A stretch of 62,996 bases of DNA, counting the filler, from Octopus bimaculoides (Eukaryota): NCBI RefSeq assembly GCF_001194135.2. It is 5 parts of 5 records of this genome, joined end to end, with 100 filler letters (N's around TTAATTAATTAA, not from the genome) between each part and the next. Parts side by side here need not be neighbours in the genome. Positions count along the whole stretch, not along the records: positions 31,552 to 39,551 come from NC_068990.1; 4 more parts are not named here. The stretch is one strand, 5' to 3'. The number at the start of each line of letters is the position of its first letter. The stretch's first letter is position 1. The notes under the pieces were generated by a model. That model did no database searches. It saw only the letters and a list, made by a program, of their open reading frames with translations, and had not been told where the DNA came from. Positions 31,845 to 39,310 of this stretch are shown piece by piece. The translations under genes and the position numbers were made by a program.

Positions 31845-31936
31845 CTCTGGACCAGGACAGTTCATTGTTTGTGGATTAGAGCAGTTTGAGCCTGAGCATT
31901 GTAAACAACGGCCTACTTGATCAAAAAGTTGGTAGT
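31845..31936 (-). CDS. Cys-rich exon following LRRCT of the LRR gene (Ly6/uPAR-like start, tentative)
   Basis: Acceptor TTTCCTTTCATTCTGTAG, donor GAG|GTAAAA. 92 nt, phase 1-0; the only open frame is (N)YQLFDQVGRCLQCSGSNCSNPQTMNCPGPE. In frame with the 33399 donor. Confidence 0.7.
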
Positions 31937-32348
31937 CTACAGAATGAAAGGAAATGTTAACATTTAAGAGCCATCTTGTATCAGGAATACAAGTCATGAG
32001 ACAAGTATTTATGAAAAGAAACAAATTTTAAAGTATAAATAGGAAAACTATAAATTTTTAGACAAATAAGCCATGTCTGACATTGGTGGGATTTGAACTC
32101 AAAAAACTAAAGAGGAACAAATGCCACAAAGTTATTTTTTGCCAAATGCTCTAGCAGTTCTGCCAACTTGTTACCTTAGTATTCTAGCATGAAAAAAAAT
32201 AATAATAAAATTTAAAAAAATAAAAATAAAATAAAAATAAAAAATAATAATAGAGACAACACCTACATGAACTTCTAACTTGTTGTCTCTTGAGGTCTCT
32301 GGGTGAGACTTGGATCCAACTTGTACAATTGCAAAGCAAAAGTCAAAC

Positions 32349-32352
<4 letters not shown>

Positions 32353-32433
<81 letters not shown>

Positions 32434-32620
32434 CCCTAGGCACAAAGCCTGAAATTTTAGAGGAGGGGACTAGTTGATTACATTGTCCCCAGTTTTTCAC
32501 TAGCACTTAATTCATCAACCCTGAAAGGATGAAAGGCAAAGTCGCCAGTGGAATTTGAACTCAGAACATAAAGACAGACAAAATGCCACAAAGATTTTTG
32601 CCCAGTGTGCTACTAATTCT
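32353..32620 (-). mobile_element. SINE family B copy whose 3' tail is the (AAT)n tract at 32353-32432
   Basis: Family B body directly abuts the microsatellite. Confidence 0.7.
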
Positions 32621-32719
32621 AATAATAAAAATCCTTTCTTTCTACTAAAGGCACAAGGCCCAAAATTTGGTAGAAGAGGCTTGTCGATTAAACTGATCCC
32701 AGTTTATATTGATCCCAGT

Positions 32720-32960
32720 TTCCGTCTTGGTAGCTTTTCATAACTACCTCAGCAATTTGGCATAACACTCTTCATTGAGGGTGTGGCCCTTTTGAAGATA
32801 GTTATTAAATGCAATGCCCTTTGCATTCTAAAAAACTGAGACCATCACCTTTCCTACTGATGAAACGACCTTGGTCTTCTTTGGAGCAGGTGAGGAGGAG
32901 TGTTTCACTGCATGGACTGTCTCTTTGTCTCTGGTTCAAAGTGATGATCCCACAAGGATT
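32720..32960 (-). mobile_element. Mariner transposase fragment
   Basis: NNYLQKGHTLNEECYAKLLR resembles mariner IDYLQKGHTINGEYYANLLR. Confidence 0.65.
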
Positions 32961-33398
32961 GAAAGACAAAGTCGACTTCAGCCGAATTTTAATTTGGAAT
33001 TTAAAGCTAAAAGAAATGTTGCAAAGCATTTTGTCTGGTGTTCTAACAATTCAGCCAGCTTGAAGCCTTAATAATTACAACAAATAAGTTGCTCATGACA
33101 GGATTTGAACTCAGAACAAGAATAGCCAGAGAAACGATGGTTTCAAATTTTGGCACAAAATGAGCAATTTTAGCAGGAGGAAACAAGTCCATTACATTGA
33201 CCTAAATGTTTTACTGGCGCTTTATGTTATTGTTGTACCAGTTCTAGATTTTATTGAAGTACTTTATTATTTGAATTCACAATCTAAGGACAAAAGAAAT
33301 GCCATTAAGCATTTTATCTGGCATGGCAACGAATCTGCCAGCTCTCTGCCTTATATGAAATCATAAATGATACCAGAAATTTTGAAAATGTTACCTAC

Positions 33399-33571
33399 TC
33401 CCACAAAAATTTTGAATATCTGCATCTAGATCCCATAGAGTCTTGTCTCTTTGCTGTGGAAGAATGCATTTTCCTGAGACATTAAGATTTGTTTGATTCG
33501 TTTGCTTCATATACCTCTTAAGAGCTGGAAGGTGACATCCACACAGCAAATTAGAGTTATTATTCATTTGG
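33399..33571 (-). CDS. Last LRR + LRRCT cap exon of the LRR gene
   Basis: Acceptor TTTTTTTTCTGTTTAATTATAG. 173 nt, phase 2-1, open: (I)QMNNNSNLLCGCHLPALKRYMKQTNQTNLNVSGKCILPQQRDKTLWDLDADIQNFCG, with the CxC...C...C LRRCT pattern. Donor GTAGGT at 33398 (alternative GTAACA at 33394). Confidence 0.88.
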
Positions 33572-36339: not shown

Positions 36340-36690
36340 ATTGATATCGGTATGAATATGAATTCATAGTCCGGATATAGAAGCTAGAGGTTTCAAAGCA
36401 GCTGGCCATAGATATCTTCTTTTTCTTTGATTTTCAAAGAGATATTTATATCTGCAGAGCAGCTGACCTCTCTGATGGTACATACCTTTGCCCTTCTGTC
36501 CCAATCAACAACCTCTGGCCTGTCATGTTTACATTTGACAGAAGTTTTGATGGGAATATTCCACCAGTATTCTTTGAGTTAGTGTTTATGAATGTATTCC
36601 ATAACAGAGGGATTTTCTAAGTCTATTTCATGACAGTCTTTTTTCAGCTGGCATTGTAAATTGTTTTAGCAACAACATTGTGCTGCATAG
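36340..36690 (-). mobile_element. Remnant of a restriction-like-endonuclease non-LTR element (R4/NeSL/CRE-type)
   Basis: QHNVVAKTIY (RHN/RHD motif), then WWNIPIKTSVKCKHDRPEVVDWDRRAKVCTIREVSCSADINISLKIKEK (PD..D/ExK nuclease). Confidence 0.65.
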
Positions 36691-37057
36691 GGAGGTGTAT
36701 GTATGTATGTATGTATGTATGTATTTATGTATGCATGTAATGCATGTCATGTATGTATATATCTTTCACTGATACATATCGGCATATCAGGGATGAAATT
36801 GGAAAAATCCAGTGCTTTTTTAATACAATCCCTTGTATCTTTTACCGTTCAGAAACATGAAAAACAAATGACCTACTGGTTGAAAACATGAGCTAGGACG
36901 CTATTTCCTGAGTTGTAATATAGCATAAAAACAATTTAGTTTTCCAGTCATGCAATACCAAATAAAATATATTTACAGATTATAGCCATATGAAGTATTG
37001 AACTATTTTGAAAGTTTCCAAAAACTACAAATCTATAATATGAATATCTTTACTTAC

Positions 37058-37129
37058 AATTCTTCCAAGGAAGCCATATGTTGAAAGGTGTTTAGTGGTA
37101 TATATGTCAATTCATTATTGCTGAGATTC
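37058..37129 (-). CDS. 72-nt single-LRR exon
   Basis: TTTTCTTCAG acceptor, GTAAGT donor, phase 2-2: (L)NLSNNELTYIPLNTFQHMASLEE(L). Confidence 0.93.
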
Positions 37130-37387
37130 CTGAAGAAAATATATTGAAATATATGATTTAAAAAATATTATCAAAATATATAGTTTAGTATGTGTATATT
37201 TGCGTGTACATATTTTAACTTGCTTGATAAAATCTTGGGAAACTAAATTTAAATTATAAAAGCTCAACAATAATAAAAAAGAAACTGATCAATCTAAATT
37301 ATAAATAGGAAGTAAGATGGCTGTGTGTTTCTGGTGCTGAATTACTGAATTACATGCATTCCACCACGTTTCTCATATCATTAAAAA

Positions 37388-37560
37388 TATTTTAGGGCAT
37401 TTTGTCTTTACGTTCTGAGTTCAAATACCACCGAGGTCGACTTTGCCTTTCATCCTTTCGGGGTCGATAATTTAAGTACCAGTTGCGTACTGGGGTCGAT
37501 CTAATCGACTAATCCCACCTCCCCAAAACTTTCGGGCCTTGTGCCTAGAGTAGAAAAGAA
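37388..37560 (+). mobile_element. SINE family B (B box + Meta/Sauria-SINE-like central domain, tentative)
   Basis: GAGTTCAAATACC...GAGGTCGACTTTGCCTTTCATCCTTTCGGGGTCGATAATTTAAGTACCAG. Confidence 0.8.
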
Positions 37561-38199
37561 TTAGTGATAGATAGTCTAGGCTGGAGGTGGGGAATCAAAT
37601 AATGAAGGTGGGTTGGGGTAGAAGGTGAGTACTGAGGTATGTAGAAGTATATGAGAGTAAATAGAGAGAGGTGGATAGAGAGGGAGGAAGGGAGGAATTG
37701 GTTGGTAGCTAGTTCAGGGGGATAGTTGTGAGTTGTTTTGGTTGAAAGGGAGATAGGAAAATGGGGAAAGAATACAACGTGTGAAGAAGGGGTGACTTGA
37801 GGGAGTTTCGATGTGGTGGGTAAGAGGAATTTGCAAAGATAATCATAAGAAGGAATAATTTAGTTGAAAGAGTGGAATTAGTGGTGGGGGTAAGGATAAT
37901 CATAGTTAAGGGATTGCATAGACTTAATAAAATGGGTAAACGATGAGTAGAACCTGTGTTTCCAAGCGAGTATTGCATCTGAGAATCTGTTAAGCAATGA
38001 GGGGTTGTGGTTGTGAAAGATGGTTAGCGAGCCCCTTAAACACAATTTACAAATGCCAGACCCAAGCTGTTATAGCTAATTTGTTTATCTGCATTGTACT
38101 AGTGACGTCATCACTTGGTCCCACCCACTTTCTAAAAAGTCCTGCACTCATTTCCTTCAATTTGACATCTCTCATTTATATACTTCCATATCGCCTTTT

Positions 38200-39150
38200 C
38201 TTTTAATTAAGGCTCTAATCTTCGCTAGGAAAACACTAATTTACTTTAAGGATAACTACTGGATCTGCAACTCATCTATGGATTTCTTTGATATAATCAT
38301 GGGCTCTTATGACTCAGCCCAGATTACTAACCTAGTTGGCCTATTACTTCTTTCCCAAATTAAAAAAAAACACTTCTCTAACCGCTAGGGAGGGCTCTAC
38401 AGGGATGATGCACTCCTTACAGCTACTGACCTAACTTAACCTTCAGTTGAACGCACTAAGAAAGCCCTCCATAAACTCTTGAAAAATTATAACCTAAGTA
38501 TCTCTTTCGAAAATAAGACCAAAGTGGCCAGTTTCTTAGATTTAAATACAAACCTATATCACCGTTTTCATAGACCCAATCGATCATTACAATATATCAA
38601 CGTCCTATCAAATTACCCTACACTTACCTTTAATAACATAGTCACCGACATCTCTATCAGAATCTCCAACCTATCAGTTAATGAAGACATTTTAAAAATA
38701 ATCACGTCCTGAATCAGTTGTTTCTGCAAAAAGATCTCTTATATCCCCAACACTGAACTTAAAACTAAAATTGCACATCTCTTTCCTAGTACTAATCCTG
38801 GACCCATAGACGTTCTTCCACGCATCAACAATACACCAATCCTCACCCCACCTCTATGCATCACACTCGACAGCTCTACCGGCCACCTCAAAGCTATAAT
38901 GATTACAGACCTCACTCTCTGGACCCACCCACAATAGCCAAGCTCTCTGAGGGTAGGAAGTGCGAGATCCTATGGTTTGCACTACCTTTCTCCTTCCAAC
39001 TCAAATCTATACTTAACTTTTCTTTAAACTTCTAAGCTGTAATTTCCTAGCACAGCGTAAACATTAACCTTTTTTCAATAAATGATCTATTAAAATCTCC
39101 TACTCTACCACGCCTAATTTAGGATCCATAATTGCCTCCTTTAACAGACG
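38200..39150 (+). mobile_element. Third, heavily decayed Penelope-like element (same class as 20.2-23.0 kb)
   Basis: DIIMGSYDSAQITNLVGLLL, GLYRDDAL, SFLDLN...HRPNRSLQYINVLSNYP, EILWFALPF, IKISYSTTPNLGSIIAS. Confidence 0.75.
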
Positions 39151-39238
39151 CAGTAGTAGGCGGAAGGATATTTTGGAAATGAATTAATACGTCTGCAAGA
39201 GGAGTGGAAAGAGTTTATGAATAATTTATCCAACTTAC

Positions 39239-39310
39239 AAGAACTTTAATTTTTGAAGATTTATGAAGGCTCCAGTTTCGATTCTGCTTATTTCATTATT
39301 ATCTAAATAT
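39239..39310 (-). CDS. 72-nt single-LRR exon (most 5' exon found for the LRR gene)
   Basis: GTTTATCTTTCAG acceptor, GTAAGT donor, phase 2-2: xYLDNNEISRIETGAFINLQKLKF(L). Confidence 0.93.

Follow-up and report, generated by a model that had tools for sequence, protein, structure and literature searches.

Which protein is encoded by five exons on the minus strand of a piece of the Octopus bimaculoides genome, and does the short cysteine-rich exon at their 3' end belong to a three-finger domain of the Ly6/uPAR (LU) type? The window, that is, the whole stretch of DNA analysed (62,996 nucleotides (nt) including filler, assembly GCF_001194135.2), is joined from five parts, and the exons lie at positions 31,845 to 39,310 in the part taken from NC_068990.1 (positions 31,552 to 39,551). 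This piece is base-for-base identical to GCA_001194135.2 CM046610.1 and occupies positions 17327-25326 of a 39.6-kb locus, referred to as L001 in the following. It most likely encodes three leucine-rich repeat (LRR) units, an LRRCT cap and the first finger of an LU domain resembling that of LYPD1/Lynx2. Sequence comparison with paralogues suggests that the complete gene probably codes for a single adhesion G-protein-coupled receptor (GPCR) with the order signal peptide–LRRNT–LRRs–LRRCT–LU–SEA-like–HormR-like–GAIN/GPS–class-B seven-transmembrane (7TM) domain.

Five exons of an annotated leucine-rich repeat gene

The exons are given below in the order of transcription, with positions in the window. 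Two annotated O. bimaculoides proteins serve as reference, P0001 (A0A0L8FLF8/XP_014789000.1, 262 amino acids (aa)) and P0003 (XP_052826939.1, 308 aa).

39239..39310, minus strand: LRR exon of 72 nt, phase 2-2, encoding (Y)LDNNEISRIETGAFINLQKLKFL, residues 101-124 of XP_052826939.1; AG/GT sites, exact match to P0001/P0003, Pfam LRR_8
37058..37129, minus strand: LRR exon of 72 nt, phase 2-2, encoding NLSNNELTYIPLNTFQHMASLEEL; AG/GT sites, translation, Pfam LRR_8
35875..35946, minus strand: LRR exon of 72 nt, phase 2-2, encoding NLNNNNIRSYGMNSFLFLPNIHT(I); AG/GT sites, translation, Pfam LRR_8
33399..33571, minus strand: exon of 173 nt, phase 2-1, with the last partial LRR and a four-Cys LRRCT cap (LLCGCHLP...GKC...NFCG); alignable with the LRRCT exon of the paralogues
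31845..31936, minus strand: exon 5 of 92 nt, phase 1-0, putative LU-A exon opening a Ly6/uPAR three-finger domain, with the translation (N)YQLFDQVGRCLQCSGSNCSNPQTMNCPGPE; size, phase and position as in paralogues, LU profile

All five exons are preceded by a polypyrimidine tract and AG and followed by GT, and their joining led to a stop-free sequence of 481 nt and to the same 160-aa peptide that a sequence-only reading of this DNA had put forward. The peptide matches A0A0L8FLF8/XP_014789000.1 with 100% identity over 100% of its length (E=2.4e-102) and is also contained, at 100%, in the newer model XP_052826939.1; that the five exons are real coding exons is virtually certain. As these matches at the protein level are to annotated models, the gene is already present in UniProt and RefSeq for O. 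bimaculoides and is not a hidden gene, as had been supposed.

Very probably, the five exons are the internal middle part of a much larger gene. Sequenced DNA upstream of the piece holds the exons for the N-terminus, with the signal peptide, LRRNT and first LRR encoded at L001 10001-10228 and a further exon at 13976-14050, so the earlier suggestion that the terminal exons lie in gaps does not apply to the N-terminus, while for the C-terminus it is probably correct, with an N gap following exon 5. On this side the two public models differ: the older XP_014789000.1 reads through the donor of exon 5 and ends with …PGPEVK*, and the newer XP_052826939.1 splices exon 5 to small exons at L001 28699-28758 and 29489-29572.

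Pfam analysis of the 160-aa peptide gave LRR_8 with E=1.6e-18, and analysis of residues 1-260 gave LRR_8 with E=7.4e-38 together with an LRRNT match slightly under the cutoff (E=6.2e-5, 22.9 bits). No LRRCT family was reported by the Pfam scans; the LRRCT was assigned from its CxC-x24-C-x22-C pattern and from the alignment to paralogues. An LRRNT cap, LRR units and an LRRCT cap, as found in extracellular capped LRR proteins, are thus all present, in agreement with the LRR and LRRCT assignment made before. Three predicted RefSeq isoforms of an O. sinensis paralogue, P0132, P0154 and P0155 (525, 501 and 477 aa), are distinguished only by the presence or absence of complete 24-aa LRR units, as expected if symmetric 72-nt phase 2-2 LRR exons act as skippable cassettes.

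The cysteine exon and the LU module of its paralogues

A full-library phmmer search with P0001 led mostly to giant multi-LRR proteins, and the informative matches were P0132 (O. sinensis XP_036369232.1) and P0147 (O. bimaculoides XP_052833921.1) only. In both, the alignment runs through residue 260 and is followed by a full module of 12 Cys, with the consensus …YSLFQRNLQCQTCSGxxCNxxxVTSCPGxEPVCxxxxSMNGxxLKxERSCSTYRKCxEAMRNNTxTCNKxxNGTSCxxCCxGxLCNKNDF after the LRRCT. Eighteen such paralogue modules were extracted, of which 17 have 12 Cys and P0172 has 11, and all of them end with the Cys-rich motif CC-x4-CN (CCxxxxCN). The C-terminal CCxxDxCN motif that the sequence-only reading had expected of an LU domain is therefore represented in the paralogues, as CCxGxLCNKN. 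In the alignment, exon 5 covers the N-terminal 30 residues of the module and retains all four Cys as well as the LF, SG and PGxE motifs; three of its Cys fall on invariant columns of the paralogue alignment and one on a nearly invariant column. Its translation RCLQCSGSNCSNPQTMNC shows the LxCxxC start of an LU N-terminus and the Cys of a first finger. Against an LU profile built without exon 5 it scored 17.8 bits, and all of 2000 shuffled sequences scored lower (maximum 11.2); when the six-frame translation of the entire L001 (39.6 kb) was searched, exon 5 was the sole significant LU match (E=0.001).

Comparison of the module profile with all PDB chain sequences led to human LYPD1/Lynx2 (6zss) as best match, aligned end to end with E=0.0015, with all 12 Cys and the terminal CC..LCN matched at a sequence identity of ~28%. 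Activin receptor type 1, LYPD6 and a three-finger toxin complete the list of PDB matches. For the fold, the paralogue module (P0163 region, 16-row alignment) was modelled with AlphaFold2, resulting in a mean predicted local distance difference test (pLDDT) score of 66.8 and a predicted template modelling score (pTM) of 0.55; the model shows five to six strands plus a loop-3 helix. The top 50 Foldseek matches of this model were three-finger folds without exception (50/50), with Lynx2 first (probability 1.00, template modelling score (TM) 0.62/0.65), followed by snake toxins, PSCA, Prod1, uPAR, TGF-beta-family receptors, LYPD6 and Lynx1.

Some results speak against an LU assignment. Exon 5 is divergent, with 16-18 bits compared to 49-54 bits for the LU-A exons of paralogues, and the confidence of the LU model is only moderate, as seen from its pLDDT. 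In addition, Pfam LU families (UPAR_LY6 and relatives) were not detected at E<=10 in P0132, P0147 or the isolated modules; an LU domain in these proteins is therefore invisible to routine Pfam annotation. The missing Pfam match, and the fact that only four Cys are visible in the window gene, would also fit another small disulfide domain behind the LRRCT, such as EGF, furin/TNFR-like or PSI. This is very improbable, however, as the profile search yielded LU and three-finger proteins only, with the Cys in one-to-one correspondence with those of LYPD1, as the top Foldseek matches all share the three-finger fold, and as the paralogue modules carry the C-terminal CC-x4-CN motif. Assignments of the Cys exon to EGF, furin, TNFR or PSI were dropped, as every profile and fold match was a three-finger protein.

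For the family, an LU module is thus supported by the paralogue profile and by the predicted fold, and going by its alignment to this module, exon 5 is very likely the first exon of an LU domain. The proposal that the CxxC-x4-C-x7-C exon forms the first finger of a Ly6/uPAR domain is borne out by the 12-Cys modules of the paralogues, with LYPD1 as best match by both profile and fold.

The predicted second LU exon and the assembly gap

In two gap-free paralogous loci the LU module is encoded by two exons with AG/GT sites, separated by an intron of 1.7 or 4.1 kb:

LU-A, paralogue exon: exactly 92 nt, phase 1 to 0, coding sequence ending with …E
LU-B, paralogue exon: exactly 184 nt, phase 0 to 1, encoding PVC…CNKNDxI

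Exon 5 of the window corresponds to LU-A in size, phases and position. The piece stops at a gap of 1635 N (L001 25327-26961), which begins 293 bp past exon 5, and the missing 184-nt LU-B (phase 0 to 1) would lie in this gap. The donor of exon 5 is in phase 0 and the acceptor of the first exon behind the gap, described below, is in phase 1, which is exactly what LU-B would require. From these phases, the simplest reading is that LU-B should be located in the gap; alternatively, it may have been lost in this copy. (TA)n and (TG/CA)-rich repeats abut both N gaps (window 39490-39551 and 31552-31575) and probably explain the assembly breaks there.

Probable continuation into a downstream 7TM gene

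Behind the gap, five exons on the gene strand of L001 were found, all with canonical AG/GT sites:

L001 27118-27236, gene strand: SEA exon 1, unannotated, acceptor phase 1, encoding GWTHSFLFNLTF…AKNISRI; Pfam SEA above cutoff (E=1.4e-7, 32 bits)
L001 28699-28757, gene strand: SEA exon 2, identical with the 'tail' exon of XP_052826939.1; AG/GT
L001 29695-29852, gene strand: SEA exon 3, containing the ATG annotated as start of the following gene (L001 29804); AG/GT
L001 30951-31071, gene strand: fourth exon of the path; AG/GT
L001 32984-33144, gene strand: fifth exon of the path; AG/GT

They join without a stop and give a SEA-like and a HormR-like region collinear with the paralogues. The next RefSeq gene is on the same strand and starts 229 bp past the end of the window gene, and its 719-aa product contains Pfam GAIN_ADGRA3, GPS and 7tm_2. 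In-frame canonical splicing connects SEA exon 1 to this GAIN/GPS/7tm_2 model; the connection of exon 5 to SEA exon 1 would need an exon in the gap. As a result, one SEA-like domain is distributed over two RefSeq models, with its first exon unannotated, its second used as a tail and its third containing the start codon of the downstream model, which is best explained by a single gene broken in the annotation by the gap. The two models would then be one transcription unit split by the N gap, and from splice phases and homology we consider it probable that the window gene is one unit with the downstream 7TM gene. The spliced SEA composite reached 25.5 bits with a Pfam cutoff of 26.4, and the SEA-like model of a paralogue showed a confident beta-alpha-beta-beta-alpha-beta fold. 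The HormR assignment is based on a C…WP…PC…ATR.C…W…C motif and a sub-threshold Pfam HRM match. No significant match was obtained when the profile of the SEA/HormR region was compared with PDB sequences. The GPS exon at the window gene's locus falls outside L001; in relatives the GPS motif is HL|T(S), with CSCNHL|TSF in P0004 (an O. vulgaris relative, see below) and CSCDHL|TSF in locus L004.

A number of observations have to be set against a single receptor gene. LU-B was not found in any sequenced part of L001, although the same search gave 96-100 bits in control loci; as far as can be seen, the LU domain of the window gene itself is incomplete. The tail of XP_052826939.1 beyond exon 5 (a RefSeq prediction) contains no Cys, so the expected Cys-rich end of the LU domain is seen in the paralogues and not in the window gene. 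For the SEA model, Foldseek returned generic ferredoxin-like folds only; Pfam HRM matched a paralogue only and under cutoff (E=5.9e-4), and the HormR part of the structural model had pLDDT <50. Two Cys conserved among paralogues are absent here, one in the SEA domain (VRYFR instead of 'VEYCG', L001 28699-28757) and one in the HormR-like domain (the Cys of '…KCSPF', 32984-33144), which could reflect divergence or early decay. Finally, no database model among the family members covers the whole length from LRR to 7TM.

It was considered whether the gene might encode a stand-alone secreted LRR protein as annotated, with signal peptide, LRRNT, LRRs, LRRCT, a four-Cys LU stub and a Cys-free tail, and with the GAIN/GPS/7TM gene as a separate unit. 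By homology, the 'tail' exon represents the central part of the SEA domain of paralogues, and the first SEA exon is skipped; in the annotated product both the SEA and the LU domain would consequently be broken. The downstream model has its start codon within the third SEA exon, and the gap is located exactly at the expected position of LU-B, with fitting phases. We therefore regard a stand-alone protein as unlikely, even though both public models stop shortly past exon 5, short models are frequent in the family, LU-B is not seen in the sequenced L001 DNA and exon 5 can be spliced in frame to L001 28699 (phase 0 to 0).

A decaying duplicate, that is, a pseudogene or partly dead copy of an LRR-LU adhesion-GPCR family whose exons are open only through recent duplication, was also taken into account. 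The 12 of 12 exons examined are open with canonical AG/GT sites and compatible phases, and LU-A keeps all four Cys and the flanking motifs, which makes such decay quite improbable. It would be compatible with the two lost Cys, with a competing acceptor at L001 29489, from which the exon 29489-29572 runs into a stop (…FAINTK*), and with an LU-A that has diverged more than any other in the comparison (37% identical to the reference paralogue). The family is also large, restricted to Octopus and contains many fragmentary or rearranged copies, for example the inverted partial GAIN/GPS duplicates in L002, an O. vulgaris locus.

If the single receptor gene is assumed, the LRR arc and the three-finger LU domain would form a distal ligand-binding head for an extracellular partner, and the SEA-like, HormR-like and GAIN domains would form a stalk. 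Going by the motif in paralogues, GAIN would be cleaved at HL|T, and ligand or force would then expose a tethered agonist and activate the class-B 7TM domain. Beyond the domain order, this mechanism is inferred by analogy with known adhesion GPCRs.

Relatives in Octopus

Among the 25 relatives obtained by the profile search, no species other than O. bimaculoides, O. sinensis and O. vulgaris is represented, and from these sequences the family appears so far to be known from Octopus only. One relative carries the NCBI name 'ly6/PLAUR domain-containing protein 1-like'. Fragmentary models, namely P0166 (LRR–LU–HormR–GAIN), P0163 (LRRCT–LU–SEA–HormR) and P0147 (LRR–LU–GAIN), together span LRR-LU-SEA-HormR-GAIN, and a second locus shows the same order, with P0162 (LRRCT–LU–GAIN) followed by a GPS+7tm_2 model with CSCDHL|TSF. 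In the loci examined, family members are annotated piecemeal as 'LRR protein', 'uncharacterized' or 'GPCR' models.

When homologues of the SEA/HormR/GAIN exons were searched for, P0004 from O. vulgaris, named 'adhesion G-protein coupled receptor G6-like' by NCBI, was the only relative obtained. At its locus L002, a rearranged paralogue (O. vulgaris OX597815.1), no LRR, LU or SEA was found in the 14 kb upstream of the first HormR exon. Inverted partial GAIN/GPS exon duplicates flank the P0004 gene (297-437, 5628-5756 and 25958-25984, minus strand), and an unannotated HormR exon lies within its first intron (L002 14032-14145).

Comparison with known proteins

LYPD1/Lynx2, the best profile and structural match of the octopus module, shares its 12-Cys LU framework and the terminal CC...LCN. 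It is a single-domain, GPI (glycosylphosphatidylinositol)-anchored protein, whereas the octopus LU domain is one of several in an ectodomain and is flanked by LRRCT and the SEA-like domain. To our knowledge, LU domains are almost always found either singly, GPI-anchored or secreted, or in tandems made up of LU domains only. Among adhesion GPCRs, ADGRA2/ADGRA3 (GPR124/GPR125) are similar in their N-terminal LRRs with LRRCT, HormR, GAIN/GPS and class-B 7TM, and the downstream Pfam match is GAIN_ADGRA3. In ADGRA receptors, LRRCT and HormR are separated by an Ig domain. At this position the octopus paralogues have the LU and the SEA-like domain instead, and an Ig domain between LRRCT and HormR was not found, with no Ig family in the Pfam scans. 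ADGRG6 (GPR126) resembles the octopus proteins in the order SEA, HormR and GAIN/7TM. It carries N-terminal CUB and pentraxin domains and no LRR or LU, and the octopus SEA-like domain differs in lacking a GSVVV-type cleavage motif.

An octopus-specific, co-localised expansion of adhesion GPCRs ('group 3') with LRRs in 5/22 members and expression in axial nerve cord, suckers and skin has been described (Ritschard et al., 2019; PMC6408891). The family of the window gene is similar to this expansion in being restricted to octopus and in having some members with LRR N-termini. No Ly6, uPAR or SEA terms occur in the accessible part of the supplementary tables of PMC6408891, an adhesion-GPCR review that was checked does not mention an LU domain, and no description of LU domains in adhesion GPCRs, LRR proteins or cephalopods was found in the literature. 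The gene itself is known, and the LRR–LU–SEA–HormR–GAIN–7TM architecture appears to be new. If correct, it would be a new adhesion-GPCR ectodomain architecture and a clear case of exon shuffling, with a two-exon LU domain that has phase 1 at both its 5' and its 3' end. As family members are split into fragment models, the numbers of LRR proteins and adhesion GPCRs counted in octopus may also be distorted.

A more speculative and rather doubtful extension is a lineage-restricted octopus adhesion-GPCR family in which a Lynx/LYPD1-type domain was inserted between the LRR arc and the SEA/HormR/GAIN stalk, and in which a splice-variable number of LRRs would provide a diversified surface-recognition repertoire. 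Since Lynx-type LU domains modulate nicotinic receptors, by analogy the family might interact with the chemotactile receptors of the suckers, which are derived from nicotinic receptors.

Introns and repeats

The N-terminus MHDTIWFLNMDIYLCSLD of P0173 (O. bimaculoides LOC106883926) aligns with the translated intron end IPDTRWLLNVNISFHSVD directly upstream of exon 5 (window 31937-31990, L001 24890-24941). Either intron ends are conserved among paralogues, or an alternative first exon gives rise to LRR-less isoforms. In intron 3, broken open reading frames on the minus strand (window ~34960-35630) resemble a remnant of a mariner/Mos1-type transposase, with a weak HTH_48 match (E=0.032) as sole support. 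Short repeats that share a '…TTTGAACTCAGAAC…' core are scattered over introns 1 and 4 in both direct and inverted orientation (32086-32137 and 32548-32599; 32466-32544 compared with 37438-37516), which are probably elements similar to short interspersed nuclear elements (SINEs). A long (AAT/ATT)n microsatellite is present in intron 4 (window 32350-32445), and in intron 1 (window 37550-38050) the GC skew of the plus strand reaches 0.68, with a C/T-rich low-complexity tract on the gene strand.

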